A stretch of 64,000 bases of DNA, from NCBI GenBank assembly GCA_000320545.1, contig ADNK01001594.1, positions 81,736-145,735 on the forward strand, in the 5' to 3' direction. Each line of letters opens with the position of its first letter. Position 1 is the first letter of the stretch. This DNA is from Bigelowiella natans CCMP2755. Its lineage: Eukaryota > Protista > Cercozoa. Both the position numbers and the translations under genes were made by a program. The notes under the pieces are model-generated. The model saw nothing but the letters and a program-made list of their open reading frames with translations, had not been told where the DNA came from and searched no databases. Positions 49,885 to 57,083 of the stretch are shown piece after piece.

Positions 49885-50284
49885 TGATAAAAGTTCATGC
49901 CGATATAACTAGTACTTACGACTGCGTACTTAGCCAGTAATTCGCTAGAGTGCTTGTTACGTTGTGCCACACAGTGCAGCATGCACACCTACACCCACTG
50001 CATTTCCACACAATGATGTGTCAGCACAATGCACATTCCATCATTTAGCAACTGGCAAACAAATTGCAACATCATTAGCACTAGAGCACACCGAAAATGA
50101 GTGTGCATGTGCAAGCTAACATGTCAGTGCATGTGCCGCCACTCGGCATGGCGGTTGCCAGCACTAGAGTAGGGTAGTAGCGCAGAATCACATGCTAGCA
50201 TGCAGCGAGCGACGTGTCTAGCTCTAGATGGAGCCCGCAACTTGTGTTGCTGAGCATTGCGGAGGGTCGCAATAAAGCTTTGAT

Positions 50285-50610
50285 TGTAGCGCGTACCACT
50301 ACGCGGGCACAAGTCACGTGCGACAACAAAGGGGTTGTCGCGGATATAGAATATAGATAACGTAGATATTAATACAGCATAGGCACGTGGGTTCCGGCGG
50401 GACTCATGGCAGCACACCGGAAGTGTGCTGCCCCACGTGCGGCGGCATTCGCGAAAGCTTCGCGAATGATTACGCAGTGCACGATTTAATAAAAATATAA
50501 TCTTTAATAAAAATAAACACAACTCTTCAAAAGGAAGCAAACGTGCCTTTCCCCCCCCCTGCCTACTTGTGCACGTAGCGCCTCGGCCTGTGAACACCTT
50601 ACGCGCAACA
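50285..50610 (+). repeat. 5' LTR
   Basis: TGTAGCGCGTA...TACGCGCAACA terminal inverted repeat; direct repeat of 55708-56033; two AATAAA motifs. Confidence 0.97.
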
Positions 50611-50615
50611 ACCTT

Positions 50616-50679
50616 TGGCTTCCACGCGGGGAATCGAACCCCGATCTTGGGAGTGAAAATCCCATATCCGATTTGACTA
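50616..50679 (-). other. Extended primer-binding site / tRNA-Glu(TTC)-like sequence lacking the 5' acceptor strand
   Basis: The minus strand reads TA GTCA AATC GGAT A TGGGA TT-TTC-AC TCCCA AGAT CGGGG TTCGATT CCCCG CGTGGAA G CCA. Confidence 0.88.
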
Positions 50680-50682
50680 ACA

Positions 50683-53600
50683 ATGTCACAGCAGCTAGAA
50701 GAACAGCAGGACTTTGGCTCGCAGGCCGTGCAAGGGCACGAGCAGAAACAGGAAAGGAAGGGCGATACGGACGCTAAGGAAGGAGGAGGAACACCTCCAC
50801 AGGCACCGCCGGGACCAGCACCCGGGATTAAGAAAGCAGATGCAGCAGCAGAGGCACTGGAGAACTTCTACGAGGCGGACGACGAGGACGTGGCCGCCGA
50901 AAGCAAGAAGGTCGTAATGGCATTACGAGCCTTGCGACCCAGGGCGAGCAACTACGCCAAACTGAAAGTATCGATAGAATACAAGTATCAGACACATGAT
51001 GTTTGGGCAGCTATCATGCAGGACATCATGGATTACGAAGCAGACTTACCTCCAGAGTGGGCAGCTTTGTTTAGGAACGACGGGGGTCTGGGCGCCTCGC
51101 GGGGGACGACCCAGAGCACCGTCAAGCAGCAGCAGCCGGTACAGCGGAACACCCAGTTCATGTCTGTTAAAACAGCACCGGTTATGATAACGAAATACAA
51201 CGGGAAAAGAGGTGAGGCAAGGAGGTGGTGGAAGAACGCTAGGAGTATACTCTGCGACTTTACCCCTAACCCCACCGAAAACGACAAGCTCAAATGGCTA
51301 GCTATAATAAAGCAAGCCATGGACCTTTACGAGACAGGCAGGACCCGGATCAGGCAGCTAGAGAAAATACACACTACAGTTAGTGGGCTACGAGACGTTG
51401 AGGCGATAATGAAGGCTTTTGTAAATGAACAGGATGCTAACTCCCTACCCCAGGCTATTAGAAAATACAGAGCAATGATGCAGCATGAGAGAGAACCTGT
51501 TAGAGACTTTGCCACGCGCTTCCAGGATATGATCGACGAACTACATGATTTTAATTACAACACAGGTGATGATCAGGCAAGGTTTGAAGAGTTCAAGTTA
51601 AAGATAAAGGAATCCACTTACGTTACGGAGAAAGGCTACACCACGATGGAGGCAGCAGTGCAGGCTATATCCCTACGCGAGCAGGAGCAGGACCGCAAGT
51701 TTACCAGCCCTAAGGTACCTGGCATAGGAAACATTAACGCTATTAAGCCGCAGCGAGACTGGTACAAGGACAGGGAAGGTAACCGACGTTGCGGATACTG
51801 CTCACGTAAAGGGAAACACACCGCTAAAGACTGCAGAGACAGGAAAGAAGGACGACCCAGGATGACGATCAGGCAGCTCAACGAACACTACGAGAAGTTA
51901 AAGAGAAAGAAAGGCAGAGGACAAGGATATAACAACAGCAAATGGCAAGGCAGCAACAACGGGAAGAACAATAAATATAAGAACAAAAAGCAGAACAGTA
52001 TCAATGCTATACAGCAGCAGATAAACGGAATATTAGATCACCTTAAGCAGGCGCCGACGAAGACAGCAGTACCAGCAACGCAGGACCAAGACAAGCCCAT
52101 GACCCTAGACGACATAAAGAACTTAGGAGTATGCAACATTAATGACGAAGACGCTAACAGGACTATCAAAGTTGCTATGACCAAGGTTAAAGTTAAAGAC
52201 AGCTACGGAGACTACAAGAAACTACCTGCCCTTTGGGATAGTGGCAGCATGCCGAAGTCCTTCATAAGCCTAAGCACAGTAAGAAGGTTAGGACTATTGG
52301 ATCAAGTGACTAAGAAAGAACGTAAATATGCTCAAGCAGACGGAAGCTCTTCCATGAAGACCGTCGGTGAGCTAATGCTAAAGCTACAGATACCTGGCAG
52401 CGACGCGGAGACCCAAATCAAGACCCGAGTAGCCATGACTTTATCCATGGAACTACTCCTCGGACAGGATGCCCTAGAAAAATTAGGGGGGATCATATCA
52501 TTCTACAATCACAAGATATACTTTGCTAAGTTGCCAAAGAAGTCAGGCAGGACCATCAGCCAGAACATGATACGGCTTGACGAGTGGACCTCTGAGTCAA
52601 GCGTTAATGCGTTAGAGTTTATGGACCTAGCGGACAACAAGCTACCTACACCTACCGAGCTACGGAAGAAGAACCCCGGCAAGACCATCCGACAGATAAC
52701 GGAGCTACTGGACAAGACCCCCCCAGCTGATGATTGGGATATCGACAAAGGCAAAAAGTACATTAATAAAATATTAAACGAGAAGTACTCTGACATCACC
52801 AAGCCGACGACGAAGCCCTCCAGCAAGCTTACCCCAGTAAAGATCGAGCTAAAGAAGGGATACGAAGAGTGCATCATCAATGACCCAGAACATAGGCGAC
52901 CGGAAGCGGACTGGGAAAAGATAGAGTGGCAGATCAATGAATGGGCAAAGGAAGGGAAGATAGAGCCAAGCAACTCACCATGGAACGTGAGACATGTGCT
53001 AGCTAAGAAACCTACTTACCCTTTCTTCCGCCTGGCGCACAACTTCATCCGCCACAACCGAGTAATAAAGAGGATCCAGACACCTACACCAAGGATAGAT
53101 GACGTTATTGAACACGTCATAGGATACAAATACTACTCTTCCCTAGATAAAAATGAATCATACATGCAGACACCCATCCACAAAACCTCCCGCCCCATTA
53201 CCGCGTTCTCCAGCAGGCACAGGAAGTGGCACTTCGTCGTATTCCCTTACGGCCTAAGCATATCAGGGGATGCGTTCAGTAGTCAGAACTACAGGGCATA
53301 CACACATGATGGGATGGCGTCTGTGTTGTGGGTGTTTGTGTTTGTGTATGTGGATGATGACATAATATGTACCAACACAGTCGTCGCTCAGATCTTCCTC
53401 CTGGAAAATATATTTATTAGGTTTGCACACTTCGGTTTTACTATTAGACTGCAGAAGTGTACATTCCTAGCTACAAGAATCAAGTGGTGTGGATATTACC
53501 TGGAGCAAGGCCGCATCACCCCAAACCCCGAGAAAGTAGCAGCACTACAGCAAGCCCCTAAACCTAAGAATGCAAAGGAGTTAAAGTCATTCTTGCAGAC

Positions 53601-55656
53601 TGCAGCTTGGATACTACGTAGGTTCTCCCCTACCTACGCTAGGACTGCAGCTGCTTTTACTACTGCTTACCGGAAGGAGAACTCTGTAGGCCTCAGCTTC
53701 GCTAAGGTGTGGGCCAAGGCTGGCCTTGATGCCCACTTCGATAACCTAATAAAGTTATGCAGCAACACCCTATTGAATGCTAAGCTAGACACTACTAGAC
53801 CAGCTACCCTATGGACAGACTGGTCTAAGCTAGGTATGGCTGCTGTACTTACCCAAGACCAGCAGATCATACGGGTGTGGGGCAGGGCCTGCACAGCAGC
53901 TGAGGCCAAGTACAGCCCTACAAAAGGAGAGTATAAAGCCATGACTGAGGCGCAGAGGAAACTAAGATACTACCTGCTGTCGGTGCCCAGCTTCACCTTA
54001 ATGACTGACCACAAGCCCCTCCTAGGCATCGACCGCAAGCTCGAAGCGCCTAACGATGAGTATGCAGCTATGAGGGCGGACACGGAAGAGTTTAGGGACA
54101 AGAGGACAGTGGTCTACGCACCAGGAGACAAGCAGCTTGCTGACTATTTCAGCAGGCTGTTCGAAAAGAAAGTCCCTACCCAGGTCACCCCTATGGTTAA
54201 CGCGATTACCTTCGAGGACGGCGACTTCCTGCCTGAGCCAGAGGAGCTCCAGCACCTTCAAGAACACCTGGATAAATACAAACACAAGCATGAGGTACTT
54301 AGTGATAGGATATATGTATACACTAATAATGTTAGGCGTACCTACGTGCCACGGCGGACCAGGGGAGCCCTTCTCTTTACCGCCCATGGACCTGCACACG
54401 TAGGAGAAAACCATATCACTGCTCTACTCTACCATTACTACTGGCCCTACAAGCTAAAAGAGATAAGGACATACCTGCGTGGCTGCAGGTGCTCCAGCTT
54501 GAAGGCGGCAGGCGTCGCCACCAAGGAGTCCAGCAAGAGCCGTGCATCTAAGAAAATCAAAGCAAGGAACTTCTTAGATATCGTGCAAATTGATGTTTAT
54601 AAGTACGATGGCTATCACTACCTTACCTTCGTTGATGTGGCCACTGGAAAGTGCTGGGTTAAAAAGATTATCAAGGTCAACGTTGCTAAGAAGAACAAAG
54701 GCTTATATAAGCAGAGGCTTACTAACTGCTACCGTACCTGGGAGTCTGAGCTCCAGGCTATCCCTGATGAAGTTAGCATAAACAAGATACCAAAGAAGTT
54801 ACATGTGGATAATGAGACCTCTCTTCTACAGCTACCACACCCTAATATTGATGCCTCACCTGTATACTATGCCCAGTCCAACTCCAAGGTAGAGCGACTC
54901 CACCGCACCTTGGCCAACCTAAGCAGGATAAATAGCACCACACCAGACAAGATACAAGGGTTAGTAAACGACACCTTCACGTCTGGGGGAGGTATCAAGG
55001 ATAAGGAGAGGGAAGAAGGCGACGACAACGACGACGATACCGAGAGCGAAGACGAGAAGGTCCCGTACGATGGCCGAGTTCTAAAGGAAGGACAGTATGT
55101 TAGGGCCAAGGTAAATCTGAGATCGAGAAATAAACAAGACCCCTTCTGGGGTGGCGTTGCAAAGGTTACCGAGAGGAAGGGGAGGAAGCAGTACTACATC
55201 TATGATGGGAACAGGGTCACCTTGCGCCACATCAGTCACCTAAAGAATTATGATATCGGTGAGAAGCTCCTAGAGGATGTTAAAGTAAACCCTACTGTGT
55301 GGGAGCGAGCAATGCCTTGTTTAGGACCCCGACCTAAGTTCGATGTGGAATATGGAAACAATAAGGTCAGGGTGAACGACGATTGGCGCATGAAGATTGT
55401 CTATCTAGGCTACCCTGGATTACGAAATATGGAGAGGGTAGCTATGAAAATAAAGGACGGAAAATATCAGCTACTCTACCTAGCTGTTCCCGACTTACCC
55501 TTTGAGCACTGGTATAAGGTCCTGGGGGACCTTGATGCAGAGGGCTGGTATGGACACGAACCTAAGGACGAAGGTGAGTTCTGGGTAAGCGACAAAGGAG
55601 ATAAGGTTAGAGAGGAATCTATTACCTGGTGGTTGGTGAAGTTCCGAAAGCGATGA
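50683..55656 (+). CDS. Gag-Pol polyprotein (1657 aa): Gag with Zn knuckle, aspartic protease, RT, RNase H, integrase, extra C-terminal domain
   Basis: CGYCSRKGKHTAKDC knuckle; ALWDSGS protease; PYGL and YVDD in RT; TDWS and TDHKPL..ADYFSR in RNase H; H-H..C-C zinc domain; IDV / VDNE / SKVER integrase core; SH3-like GPY/F-type module; then ~130 further aa. Confidence 0.96.
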   Translation: MSQQLEEQQDFGSQAVQGHEQKQERKGDTDAKEGGGTPPQAPPGPAPGIKKADAAAEALENFYEADDEDVAAESKKVVMALRALRPRASNYAKLKVSIEYKYQTHDVWAAIMQDIMDYEADLPPEWAALFRNDGGLGASRGTTQSTVKQQQPVQRNTQFMSVKTAPVMITKYNGKRGEARRWWKNARSILCDFTPNPTENDKLKWLAIIKQAMDLYETGRTRIRQLEKIHTTVSGLRDVEAIMKAFVNEQDANSLPQAIRKYRAMMQHEREPVRDFATRFQDMIDELHDFNYNTGDDQARFEEFKLKIKESTYVTEKGYTTMEAAVQAISLREQEQDRKFTSPKVPGIGNINAIKPQRDWYKDREGNRRCGYCSRKGKHTAKDCRDRKEGRPRMTIRQLNEHYEKLKRKKGRGQGYNNSKWQGSNNGKNNKYKNKKQNSINAIQQQINGILDHLKQAPTKTAVPATQDQDKPMTLDDIKNLGVCNINDEDANRTIKVAMTKVKVKDSYGDYKKLPALWDSGSMPKSFISLSTVRRLGLLDQVTKKERKYAQADGSSSMKTVGELMLKLQIPGSDAETQIKTRVAMTLSMELLLGQDALEKLGGIISFYNHKIYFAKLPKKSGRTISQNMIRLDEWTSESSVNALEFMDLADNKLPTPTELRKKNPGKTIRQITELLDKTPPADDWDIDKGKKYINKILNEKYSDITKPTTKPSSKLTPVKIELKKGYEECIINDPEHRRPEADWEKIEWQINEWAKEGKIEPSNSPWNVRHVLAKKPTYPFFRLAHNFIRHNRVIKRIQTPTPRIDDVIEHVIGYKYYSSLDKNESYMQTPIHKTSRPITAFSSRHRKWHFVVFPYGLSISGDAFSSQNYRAYTHDGMASVLWVFVFVYVDDDIICTNTVVAQIFLLENIFIRFAHFGFTIRLQKCTFLATRIKWCGYYLEQGRITPNPEKVAALQQAPKPKNAKELKSFLQTAAWILRRFSPTYARTAAAFTTAYRKENSVGLSFAKVWAKAGLDAHFDNLIKLCSNTLLNAKLDTTRPATLWTDWSKLGMAAVLTQDQQIIRVWGRACTAAEAKYSPTKGEYKAMTEAQRKLRYYLLSVPSFTLMTDHKPLLGIDRKLEAPNDEYAAMRADTEEFRDKRTVVYAPGDKQLADYFSRLFEKKVPTQVTPMVNAITFEDGDFLPEPEELQHLQEHLDKYKHKHEVLSDRIYVYTNNVRRTYVPRRTRGALLFTAHGPAHVGENHITALLYHYYWPYKLKEIRTYLRGCRCSSLKAAGVATKESSKSRASKKIKARNFLDIVQIDVYKYDGYHYLTFVDVATGKCWVKKIIKVNVAKKNKGLYKQRLTNCYRTWESELQAIPDEVSINKIPKKLHVDNETSLLQLPHPNIDASPVYYAQSNSKVERLHRTLANLSRINSTTPDKIQGLVNDTFTSGGGIKDKEREEGDDNDDDTESEDEKVPYDGRVLKEGQYVRAKVNLRSRNKQDPFWGGVAKVTERKGRKQYYIYDGNRVTLRHISHLKNYDIGEKLLEDVKVNPTVWERAMPCLGPRPKFDVEYGNNKVRVNDDWRMKIVYLGYPGLRNMERVAMKIKDGKYQLLYLAVPDLPFEHWYKVLGDLDAEGWYGHEPKDEGEFWVSDKGDKVREESITWWLVKFRKR

Positions 55657-55699: not shown

Positions 55700-55707
55700 G
55701 GGGGAGG
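55700..55707 (+). other. Polypurine tract
   Basis: GGGGGAGG directly 5' of the 3' LTR, with a further purine-rich stretch at ~55663-55690. Confidence 0.8.
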
Positions 55708-56033
55708 TGTAGCGCGTACCACTACGCGGGCACAAGTCACGTGCGACAACAAAGGGGTTGTCGCGGATATAGAATATAGATAACGTAGATATTAATACAG
55801 CATAGGCACGTGGGTTCCGGCGGGACTCATGGCAGCACACCGGAAGTGTGCTGCCCCACGTGCGGCGGCATTCGCGAAAGCTTCGCGAATGATTACGCAG
55901 TGCACGATTTAATAAAAATATAATCTTTAATAAAAATAAACACAACTCTTCAAAAGGAAGCAAACGTGCCTTTCCCCCCCCCTGCCTACTTGTGCACGTA
56001 GCGCCTCGGCCTGTGAACACCTTACGCGCAACA
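55708..56033 (+). repeat. 3' LTR
   Basis: Direct repeat of 50285-50610, followed by the TGAT TSD. Confidence 0.97.
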
Positions 56034-57083
56034 TGATTCATGGTCGTCTAACTGCATGATTTTTTTGCATCAGACTTTGTTGTTTGAACTGCACCCCAAT
56101 CAGCCGCTGCTCTGAGCAGCTCACACGTGTGTGTGCCTCGATTTGACCGTGCGTACGCGGTTCAATTTCTCCTCACGTTTCTCTTGTCATTCTATCAACT
56201 TCGTGATTTTAAATTTTCGCTTCATGTTCATCCTTTGACTGTGCATCGTGAATAGCTTTGTATTAGCCGAGTGAAGGCAGTTAATAGAAATCCAAGAACT
56301 TGGGAGGAAATCTGAGCAGGACTGAATTTGATCCAGAATTGACAGGCGAAAGTCTTTGCACAATTCCTCTCTATTTCTGATTCAGCAGTGTCCGTGTAAC
56401 TCCCTTGCAGATTACTGAATCAGAGACAGAGTCTATTCACGAAGTTCTTTAACATGAGGCCCTAGTTCTTTATTAATGGTTGTCTTTGTACTAACAAGAT
56501 CTATGCTATCCTTTCAGTCTTGCCCCACATCCACATTGTTGCATTTTCGCTAGCTGTAAACAACTCAAGAATCTTTTCATTTGTTTTACTTTTTCGTTGA
56601 TCTTTTGCATCTTTGTGATTGCGCGTACCGCCTAATTTGCCTGGTCGACTGTCAACATCCTCTGTTCTCATCTTGTTCACCGCATAGTTGATTTCATAGT
56701 CCTTCTCATTTGTGTAATGAGAGTCATGTCACCAGCAGCTCAATGCGACATCTACAATGCTGTTCAATTCAAGTCAATTCGAAAGGGTTGCAAGCCTTTT
56801 CCCGATTGCGACAAGTGTGAGATGTAACCGCTGGAAAAAATAATCATACTTCAACCACTGCTGCAGGTAATTCAATTTGTGGACACGATGAAAGCTACCA
56901 ACATAAATGACAAATTCAAACCAAAGAAGGATGCTCTTCTAGTTCTTGTAAACATAACCTAGTTAGACGTATCGAAACATACATGAGCAGTAACAGTAAT
57001 CAGTTAGGTTAGATGTAAGGAACCAATCTAATGACAAGATGTTTTACATAGAGCGTTGAAGCCTTCAGATCGAATCTACCCCA

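Follow-up and report, generated by a model that had tools for sequence, protein, structure and literature searches.

Does an LTR retrotransposon in Bigelowiella natans encode the tRNA that primes its own reverse transcription? The question is raised by an element in the window, by which we mean the whole 64,000-nt stretch of DNA that was analysed. In this element a near-complete antisense tRNA-Glu begins at the primer-binding site (PBS). An earlier note on this DNA offered two explanations. Either the reverse transcriptase reads past m1A58 and copies most of its primer, or Pol III transcribes the stretch antisense, making a tRNA-like primer or recruiting TFIIIC. We find that the stretch is very probably a copy of the host primer tRNA-Glu(UUC), of the G73 isodecoder, and that it has no designed function.

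The coordinates of the element are collected in the table below. It is assigned to the Ty3/gypsy type on its TG...CA LTRs with a target-site duplication (TSD), its tRNA PBS and polypurine tract, and the order of its domains. In the gag-pol open reading frame, Pfam detected RVT_1 (amino acids 798-939) and RT_RNaseH (1018-1118), with weak matches to gag-asp_proteas (513-599) and Integrase_H2C2 (1222-1269); the integrase core (rve) was not detected by Pfam in this frame. TSDs of 4 bp also flank most of the standard copies that were checked, as well as the C2666 copy described below. The insert region aside, seven standard copies match the window copy at 100% identity over 5365 nt; it therefore differs from the master sequence only by the tRNA replacement. 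Judged by its sequence, it is a young, structurally intact member of a highly amplified B. natans family of the Ty3/gypsy type.

Features of the retrotransposon in the window (positions are those of the whole stretch)
Feature	Position	Strand	Remarks
Target-site duplication TGAT, 5' side	50281..50284	+	repeated at 56034-56037 after the 3' LTR
5' LTR, 326 bp, TG...CA	50285..50610	+	100% identity to 55708-56033; matches the LTRs of standard copies
Spacer ACCTT, 5 nt, between LTR and PBS	50611..50615	+	found in every copy read
Family-wide PBS TGGCTTCCAC, 10 nt	50616..50625	+	complement of the tRNA-Glu(UUC) 3' end, including G73 and CCA
Copy-specific insert, 44 nt of antisense tRNA-Glu(UUC), tRNA nt 65 to 22	50626..50669	+	replaces the standard 11 nt ACACGGGAAAC; 100% identical to host genes
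Rest of the ordinary family leader, GATTTGACTAACA	50670..50682	+	same in all standard copies, which lack the tRNA body
gag-pol open reading frame, intact, 1657 aa	50683..55656	+	gag ATG at 50683; protease, RT, RNase H, integrase zinc domain; Ty3/gypsy order
Polypurine tract GGGGGAGG, adjoining the 3' LTR	55700..55707	+	from sequence inspection
3' LTR	55708..56033	+	100% identity to the 5' LTR
Target-site duplication TGAT, 3' side	56034..56037	+	matches 50281-50284

We compared the tRNA-like stretch with the tRNA genes of the host. As the earlier note had proposed, the LTR is followed by a 5-nt spacer and then by TGG at 50616, and the tRNA complement runs for at least 54 nt. Read antisense, positions 50616-50669 reproduce CCA, G73 and nt 71-22 of host tRNA-Glu(UUC) without a mismatch (54 of 54 nt), in register with the PBS. 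The TTC anticodon, the T arm, the 4-nt variable loop and the anticodon stem are all as the note described them, and the 5' acceptor strand is indeed absent, tRNA nt 1-21 being missing from the insert. Four nuclear tRNA-Glu(UUC) genes, called tRNA-Glu ttc by ARAGORN on contigs C2833, C2811 and C2427 (two on the last), are 100% identical over the copied part to the antisense of 50620-50669. This supplies the exact host match that the note had proposed to look for. The stems, which the note thought different from known tRNA-Glu sequences yet paired, are simply identical to those of the host genes. G73 of the element agrees with the C2833 gene. CCA is encoded in the element and follows none of the four host genes; therefore, the template was a mature tRNA.

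These data bear on a possible origin in DNA itself, whether through gene conversion by a tRNA gene, a tRNA retrocopy inserted into the leader or an error of assembly. Identity to the host tRNA genes is what such an origin would predict. However, the copy includes CCA, which is not encoded in the genes, and in all four family members that carry a long tRNA copy the sequence begins exactly in the register of the PBS and always lies antisense. The window junction is also present in independent sequencing. In run X1 a 102-nt contig is identical to 50597-50698 and spans the junction, and run X3 holds a contig with the C197 form described below; the junctions are thus not an assembly artefact. These runs were read as Logan contigs, which are silent on strand and ends and give no dependable measure of level. 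To the right of the junction the X1 contig extends for only 29 nt, 2 below the 31-nt bridging rule applied, but it ends exactly where identity to the standard copies starts. This also explains why, in DNA runs X2 and X9, contigs joining the flank to the LTR extend only 26-28 nt into the LTR. Taken together, an origin at the DNA level is extremely improbable.

We then considered whether the minus strand of 50616-50682 could be a Pol III tRNA-like gene, either as the source of the element's own primer or as a recruiting site for TFIIIC. Some of the features that suggested this are real. The tRNA copy contains a perfect B box (GGTTCGATTCC) and an encoded CCA on the minus strand, and the T4 run that had been placed about 85 nt downstream in the LTR was found as TTTT on that strand (AAAA on the plus strand) at 50530-50533, 83 nt downstream. 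A B box on its own might, in principle, bind TFIIIC. Rfam scored 50627-50679 on the minus strand as a tRNA with 31.9 bits against a gathering score of 29, covering model positions 8-63 only. However, the cloverleaf is incomplete, with no acceptor stem, and ARAGORN called no tRNA anywhere in the window. The proposed extension to 50679 through a shortened D arm with an A box did not hold up: GATTTGACTAACA is ordinary leader and sits identically before the ATG in 29 of 29 standard copies read, all without a tRNA body. By pattern counts, the A-box bases are ordinary leader in 317 copies that lack the tRNA body, and the insert is missing from about 99% of copies.

Several further points argue against such a gene. 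Its sequence is unchanged from that of the host tRNA, and the compensatory stem changes that would have marked selection on structure are not seen, the four occurrences in the family being without variation. The host itself provides the tRNA from four genes. An encoded CCA sets the insert apart from eukaryotic nuclear tRNA genes and marks it as having been copied from mature tRNA. Weak evidence in the same direction comes from contig depth over the insert, which does not exceed what one copy among about 330 should contribute. The tRNA-like promoters of the Helenus type lie in the LTR, in sense orientation, and are not used as primers (PMC10886601). A Pol III gene at this place is accordingly very unlikely, and this part of the earlier proposal is not supported.

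How common is the long tRNA form in the family? There are about 330 near-identical copies in the B. natans genome, and the LTR end followed by the PBS 10-mer occurs at 329 places. By pattern counts, the standard leader, in which the 10-nt PBS is followed by 11 nt of non-tRNA sequence, occurs 317 times in the genome, against 4 occurrences of the long tRNA form; 29 standard copies were read directly, and five CACAA variants also occur. The long match is therefore not a feature of the family. Two outcomes that the earlier note had named as speaking against its proposal were thus obtained, namely absence of the long match from other members of the family and a host tRNA that accounts for it. The proposal that the reverse transcriptase passes position 58 stands for the window copy and fails as the family's usual mode of replication.

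The four long copies carry 54, 55, 55 and 56 nt of tRNA sequence, each with its own junction. In the window, where the microhomology at the junction is 1 nt, the leader is rejoined 11 nt past the PBS, and in the C197 copy, otherwise a normal element, it is rejoined 4 nt past the PBS. In the C2666 copy the 56 nt of tRNA sequence are joined to about nt 15 of the LTR, giving an LTR-tRNA-LTR structure, and in C3228 the tRNA copy is joined to inverted internal sequence. Across the four junctions microhomology amounts to 0-3 nt. The endpoints within the tRNA are nt 22, 21, 21 and 20, all within 3 nt of one another at the boundary of D loop and stem.

These copies could in principle belong to a replicating sub-lineage in which the long complement serves as a functional extended PBS with better primer binding. 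The window copy is structurally intact, with identical LTRs, a TSD and a full open reading frame; both it and the C197 copy carry the insert in an otherwise normal element, and were such a copy to replicate with that read-through again, the long PBS would be perfectly kept. However, genome pattern counts found each of the four junctions once only and the window junction (ATATCC joined to GATTTG) in no second copy. Two of the four long copies (C2666 and C3228) are scrambled, and standard copies outnumber long ones by 317 to 4. We regard a functional extended PBS as quite improbable. Diagnostic SNPs common to the window and C197 copies were sought, and the family is too uniform to separate descent from independence; on such near-identical copies, the two forms could also be related by an 8-nt deletion instead of having arisen in independent events.

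A search for shorter read-throughs gave one candidate only, the C3705 copy, which has GCGGGG for ACACGG in register with the standard leader. This copy is slightly diverged: it has 5 differences in 1490 nt, and its LTR differs by about 2%. Inheritance of an ordinary 18-nt strong stop could account for it, and so, just as well, could descent from an older lineage whose PBS is 16 nt long. In distant relatives on metagenome contigs, whose polyproteins are 39-45% identical, the PBS is 9-10 nt long and is followed by no long tRNA complement; for these relatives (L075-L077) the comparison covers PBS length.

The insert in the window is thus most probably a replication accident, in which read-through of the primer tRNA was followed by a template switch and integration. 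The family would prime minus-strand synthesis with host tRNA-Glu(UUC), of the G73 isodecoder, on the 10-nt PBS. During synthesis of plus-strand strong-stop DNA, the tRNA still joined to the minus strand would have been copied. In HIV-1, m1A58 is the reverse-transcription stop that sets the 18-nt plus-strand copy; when it is lost, synthesis runs on and the cDNA is not complementary to the other strand (PMC8599865). In the window copy, synthesis would likewise have passed position 58 and continued through the T arm, the variable loop, the anticodon arm and the 3' strand of the D stem, probably on a primer molecule without the usual block at A58. It would have halted at nt 22 (nt 20-22 across the four copies), leaving a 44-nt tail unpaired with the minus strand. 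The 3' end would then have changed templates, moving to the minus strand at a point 11 nt beyond the PBS with 1 nt of microhomology, and resumed synthesis. Integration of the DNA, with its 4-bp duplication, would have followed, and the plus-strand version would have been fixed. The outcome would be a standard element in which 11 leader bases have been exchanged for 44 tRNA-derived bases.

What halted synthesis at nt 20-22? We infer that it was stopped either by a blocking modification in the D loop, of which acp3U at U20 would be an example, or on reaching the 5' end of a fragment cleaved in the D loop. acp3U at position 20 is known to block reverse transcriptase (PMC11831618). Alternatively, a D-loop cut may have left a 3' fragment of tRNA-Glu as the primer; reverse transcriptase would then have reached the fragment's 5' end at nt 20-22 and moved to another template, as these enzymes do when a template ends. 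The clustering of the four endpoints within 3 nt at the boundary of D loop and stem agrees with a cut, and junction microhomology of 0-3 nt is as expected of end-to-end template jumping. Cleaved tRNAs are known primers of copia and Ty5 (cited in PMC10886601 and PMC5371799). However, a hard-stop modification at U20 predicts the identical pattern (PMC11831618), and we hold the cleaved fragment to be a possible but less probable primer. It departs from read-through of a whole tRNA only in the cause of the endpoint.

The ordinary leader itself shows a further resemblance to the tRNA. Against the acceptor and T stem it matches at 14 of 18 positions, the first 10 perfectly, and its 13-nt block AACGATTTGACTA matches the antisense of tRNA-Glu nt 8-20 at 10 of 13 (P about 0.005). 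The distant relatives L075 and L076 do not share the latter resemblance. It hints that the relationship of tRNA and leader is perhaps older or more complex than one accident. The ordinary leader might then be a two-part primer-binding region, with a putative D-arm contact, rather than a base modification, halting plus-strand synthesis at nt 20-22; we consider this unlikely. If it were true, the initiation complex of an algal retrotransposon would have left a natural footprint in the four read-through copies.

We compared these findings with known systems. [quoted passage not shown] The B. natans family is alike in having 10 perfect PBS nucleotides, and in 317 copies the bases past the PBS stay unlike the tRNA, so that tRNA sequence is normally not inherited. 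Ty1, however, is a copia-type element primed by initiator tRNA-Met, whereas the B. natans element is of the Ty3/gypsy type, uses tRNA-Glu and shows rare inheritance of 54-56 nt. Colicelli and Goff (1986) are said to have described circular retroviral DNA with a tRNA copy between the LTRs. The C2666 sister copy, with its LTR, 56 nt of tRNA copy and LTR, has this arrangement; in the window, in contrast, the tRNA copy lies between the LTR and gag of a linear element integrated with a TSD.

Read-through on tRNA-Lys3 in HIV-1 offers a further parallel. There too, plus-strand synthesis proceeds into the 3' end of the primer, continues when the stop at A58 (or U54) is lacking, and leaves extra DNA uncomplemented after strand transfer (PMC8599865); the content and orientation of the window insert are exactly as expected of such a product. 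The HIV-1 product was described as unable to integrate (PMC8599865), whereas in B. natans four are integrated, two of them in otherwise normal elements, and the second stop lies at D-loop nt 20-22 instead of U54. Helenus and Cassandra 'TRIMp3' elements, with Pol III promoters derived from tRNA or 5S, resemble the window element as LTR retroelements with a tRNA-derived B box (PMC10886601). However, the tRNA-like part of Helenus is family-wide and not complementary to the PBS, whereas that of the window is a truncated, copy-specific PBS extension in antisense. Ty1 and Ty3 make extended or bipartite primer contacts (PMC5371799), and the B. natans leader past the PBS similarly resembles the complement of other parts of the tRNA; unlike those contacts, the 10/13 match is weak, predicted from sequence and not conserved in L075 and L076.

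A retrotransposon that encodes its own primer is an attractive idea, and it is very probably wrong here. The B. natans insert is a further example of an already known type of error. For those who annotate genomes it carries a caution, in that a tRNA match beside an LTR may be a copy of the primer and not a gene. The four integrated copies among about 330 constitute a natural record of a textbook failure of reverse transcription and give a rough in-genome error rate of about 1% for the read-through step. They indicate that the plus strand can extend 54-56 nt into the primer tRNA before halting at a single discrete site in the D loop, and that read-through products can be completed through a template switch and go on to integrate, even in the form of an element that is otherwise perfect. 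A testable prediction follows on the modification or cleavage of tRNA-Glu in this chlorarachniophyte.

One LTR retrotransposon in the window is complete, with paired LTRs, a target-site duplication (TSD), a polypurine tract and a single ORF. Its polyprotein has the Ty3/gypsy order, with clear Pfam matches to reverse transcriptase and RNase H and weak ones to protease and the integrase zinc domain, and protein fragments 82-100% identical to it bear JGI 'Bigna1' gene-model names. A degenerate Dam-like methyltransferase had been suggested at the C-terminus (55261-55656); Pfam, run on the entire polyprotein with hits accepted at E up to 1, returned no methyltransferase family. Within the LTR lies a perfect 10-bp inverted repeat (50446-50469; TTCGCGAA...TTCGCGAA core), which Rfam mir-9428 matches weakly, below threshold, on both strands. 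The window is unusually rich in (GA)n and (GT)n microsatellites at many sites between 1015 and 39620, with 36 places in one repeat family.

Features of the window element, the host tRNA-Glu(UUC) genes and the four long tRNA copies
Feature	Location	Description
LTRs	50285-50610 and 55708-56033	326 bp each; 100% identical; start TG, end CA
TSD	both element flanks	4 bp, TGAT
Spacer, then TGG	directly after 5' LTR; TGG starts at 50616	ACCTT
ORF	50683-55656	single, 1657 aa
Polypurine tract	adjoins 3' LTR	GGGGGAGG
Host tRNA-Glu(UUC) genes (L005-L008)	contigs C2833, C2811, C2427 (two genes)	n=4
Long tRNA copy, 54 nt	window	joined to leader 11 nt past PBS; normal element, TSD TGAT
Long tRNA copy, 55 nt	contig C197	joined to leader 4 nt past PBS; contig ends inside element
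Long tRNA copy, 56 nt	contig C2666	joined to nt ~15 of another LTR, then standard element; 4-bp TSD
Long tRNA copy, 55 nt	contig C3228	joined to inverted internal element sequence; scrambled copy

The antisense tRNA-Glu at the primer-binding site (PBS), which the earlier note had described, is real and has the host match sought for it. Four host genes that ARAGORN types as tRNA-Glu, anticodon ttc, match bases 50620-50669 at 100% identity on their antisense strand. Adding C at 50619 (G73, shared with the C2833 gene) and TGG (CCA) gives an antisense copy that matches host tRNA at 54 of 54 nt, from tRNA nt 22 to the 3' end. The PBS fits the G73 form of tRNA-Glu(UUC); the discriminator base is G in the C2833 gene and A in the C2811 gene, as it is in the one C2427 gene for which the 3' flank was covered. 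A single internal difference sets one C2427 gene apart. CCA is present in the element and encoded by none of the four host genes, so a mature tRNA, and not a gene, served as template. The match does not continue to 50679 through a shortened D arm, as had been thought probable: 50670-50679 is ordinary leader in every copy, and so is the A-box-like sequence formed by the same bases. Rfam scores the minus strand as tRNA at 31.9 bits over model positions 8-63 only, and ARAGORN found no tRNA over the whole window. In all, 44 further tRNA-derived bases stand in place of 11 standard bases; elsewhere, seven standard copies share 100% identity with the window element over 5365 nt.

Independent sequencing runs contain the window and C197 junctions. 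A 102-nt contig from run X1 (2016) is identical to 50597-50698 of the window form, and the C197 form, including its 8 extra bases, is present in run X3 (2019). Contigs from DNA runs X2 and X9 link the 5' flank with the LTR start. These contigs stop 26-29 nt past the junctions, slightly below the 31-nt bridging rule applied, and do so exactly at the merge point with the high-copy standard form. In X2, gag depth is ~340x that of single-copy flank, in agreement with the pattern counts below. Insert depth does not exceed the share expected for 1 copy in ~330 and gives no hint of extra transcription, although contig depth is a poor, strandless measure.

The long match is not a family feature. By pattern count, the LTR end plus 10-nt PBS occurs in 329 places genome-wide and the standard leader in 317, whereas the long form occurs in only four: the window, C197, C2666 and C3228. 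Of 33 distinct copies examined, 29 show the standard order: ACCTT, the 10-nt PBS TGGCTTCCAC, ACACGGGAAAC, GATTTGACTAACA and ATG. Copying of the tRNA would turn ACAC into GCGG, yet ACAC is retained in the 317 standard copies; inheritance of tRNA sequence therefore normally ends with the 10-nt PBS. Primer tRNA sequence is reportedly not inherited in Ty1 either, judging by the title of Lauermann and Boeke (1994). Five copies (C465, C1471, C1846, C2683, C3604) have CACAA for CACAC just past the PBS, a single C-to-A change. One slightly diverged copy (L074, C3705:48086-48120) has GCGGGG instead of ACACGG there, giving 16 nt of tRNA identity in register; it could belong to an older lineage whose PBS spans 16 nt, or be a rare case in which the product of an ordinary 18-nt strong stop was inherited. 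A further copy (L072, C2955:40706-40727, minus strand) has an internal deletion that fuses the 10-nt PBS to element position ~4325, so that LTR and PBS lead straight into the final ~1.1 kb, which ends with the 3' LTR.

By comparison with the host gene, the long copies (54, 55, 55 and 56 nt) end at tRNA nt 22, 21, 21 and 20. They share a start, end within 3 nt of each other, and join four different landing sites with 0-3 nt of junction microhomology. Such a pattern would be expected if the polymerase stalled or ran off and then switched templates. An inherited designed feature would not yield a common start and endpoint with four different landing sites.

The earlier note had also raised the possibility that the minus strand is a Pol III-transcribed tRNA-like gene giving the element its own primer. 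This idea is not supported and fails because of structure and distribution: the stretch lacks the 5' acceptor strand, as that note had recognized, and a tRNA-derived D arm, and the insert is missing from ~99% of family copies. Moreover, four host genes already supply the same tRNA, and the stems, which that note took as unlike known tRNA-Glu and as fitting selection on structure, lie in sequence that does not differ from the host tRNA. In Helenus, tRNA-derived Pol III promoters lie in the LTR, family-wide, and the tRNA-like part is not complementary to the PBS (PMC10886601); the window stretch, in contrast, is a copy-specific PBS extension. Its perfect B box could be an accidental TFIIIC binding site.

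The ordinary 31-nt leader (e.g. L040:477-507, a standard copy) itself resembles two degenerate antisense tRNA-Glu blocks. Over the first 18 nt, 14/18 agree in register with tRNA nt 76-59 read antisense; over the next 13 nt, 10/13 agree with nt 20-8 read likewise, and the probability of a match this good at any place in the remainder of the tRNA is about 0.005. The gap between them is bounded by tRNA position 58 and the endpoint of the four long copies. The two blocks may reflect chance, a relic of old read-through whose middle was later lost, or a second primer contact like that of Ty1/Ty3. The nearest relatives outside this genome (L075 and L076, ENA metagenome contigs; polyproteins 39-45% identical) have a PBS of 9-10 nt (TGGTTCCCC) near the gag ATG and lack the second block. 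A short PBS thus seems typical of the clade.

The standard model of reverse transcription suggests how read-through would arise. The tRNA would prime minus-strand DNA on the 10-nt PBS; plus-strand synthesis would start at the polypurine tract and copy U3-R-U5, then the tRNA still joined to the minus strand, usually stopping near A58. In HIV-1, m1A58 is the RT stop, and without it synthesis goes on, giving cDNA non-complementary to the other strand (PMC8599865). Here, the polymerase would have continued into the D loop, leaving a 44-nt tail unable to pair with the minus strand. The tail end would then have primed on the minus strand near the tethered PBS duplex (window, C197) or elsewhere (C2666, C3228), and the finished DNA would have integrated. 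The halt at nt 20-22 may be due to a modified U20/U20a that RT cannot pass; acp3U at position 20 is such a block, and dihydrouridine leaves no misincorporation signal (PMC11831618). Alternatively, it may mark the 5' end of a tRNA fragment cleaved in the D loop. Read-through of the primer, the other explanation in the earlier note, is right for the window copy but not as the family's usual mode, with four long copies against 317 standard ones. The insert is a read-through product, a rare accident of reverse transcription. Errors of this kind are known, and the window copy adds a new example, in an otherwise perfect element.
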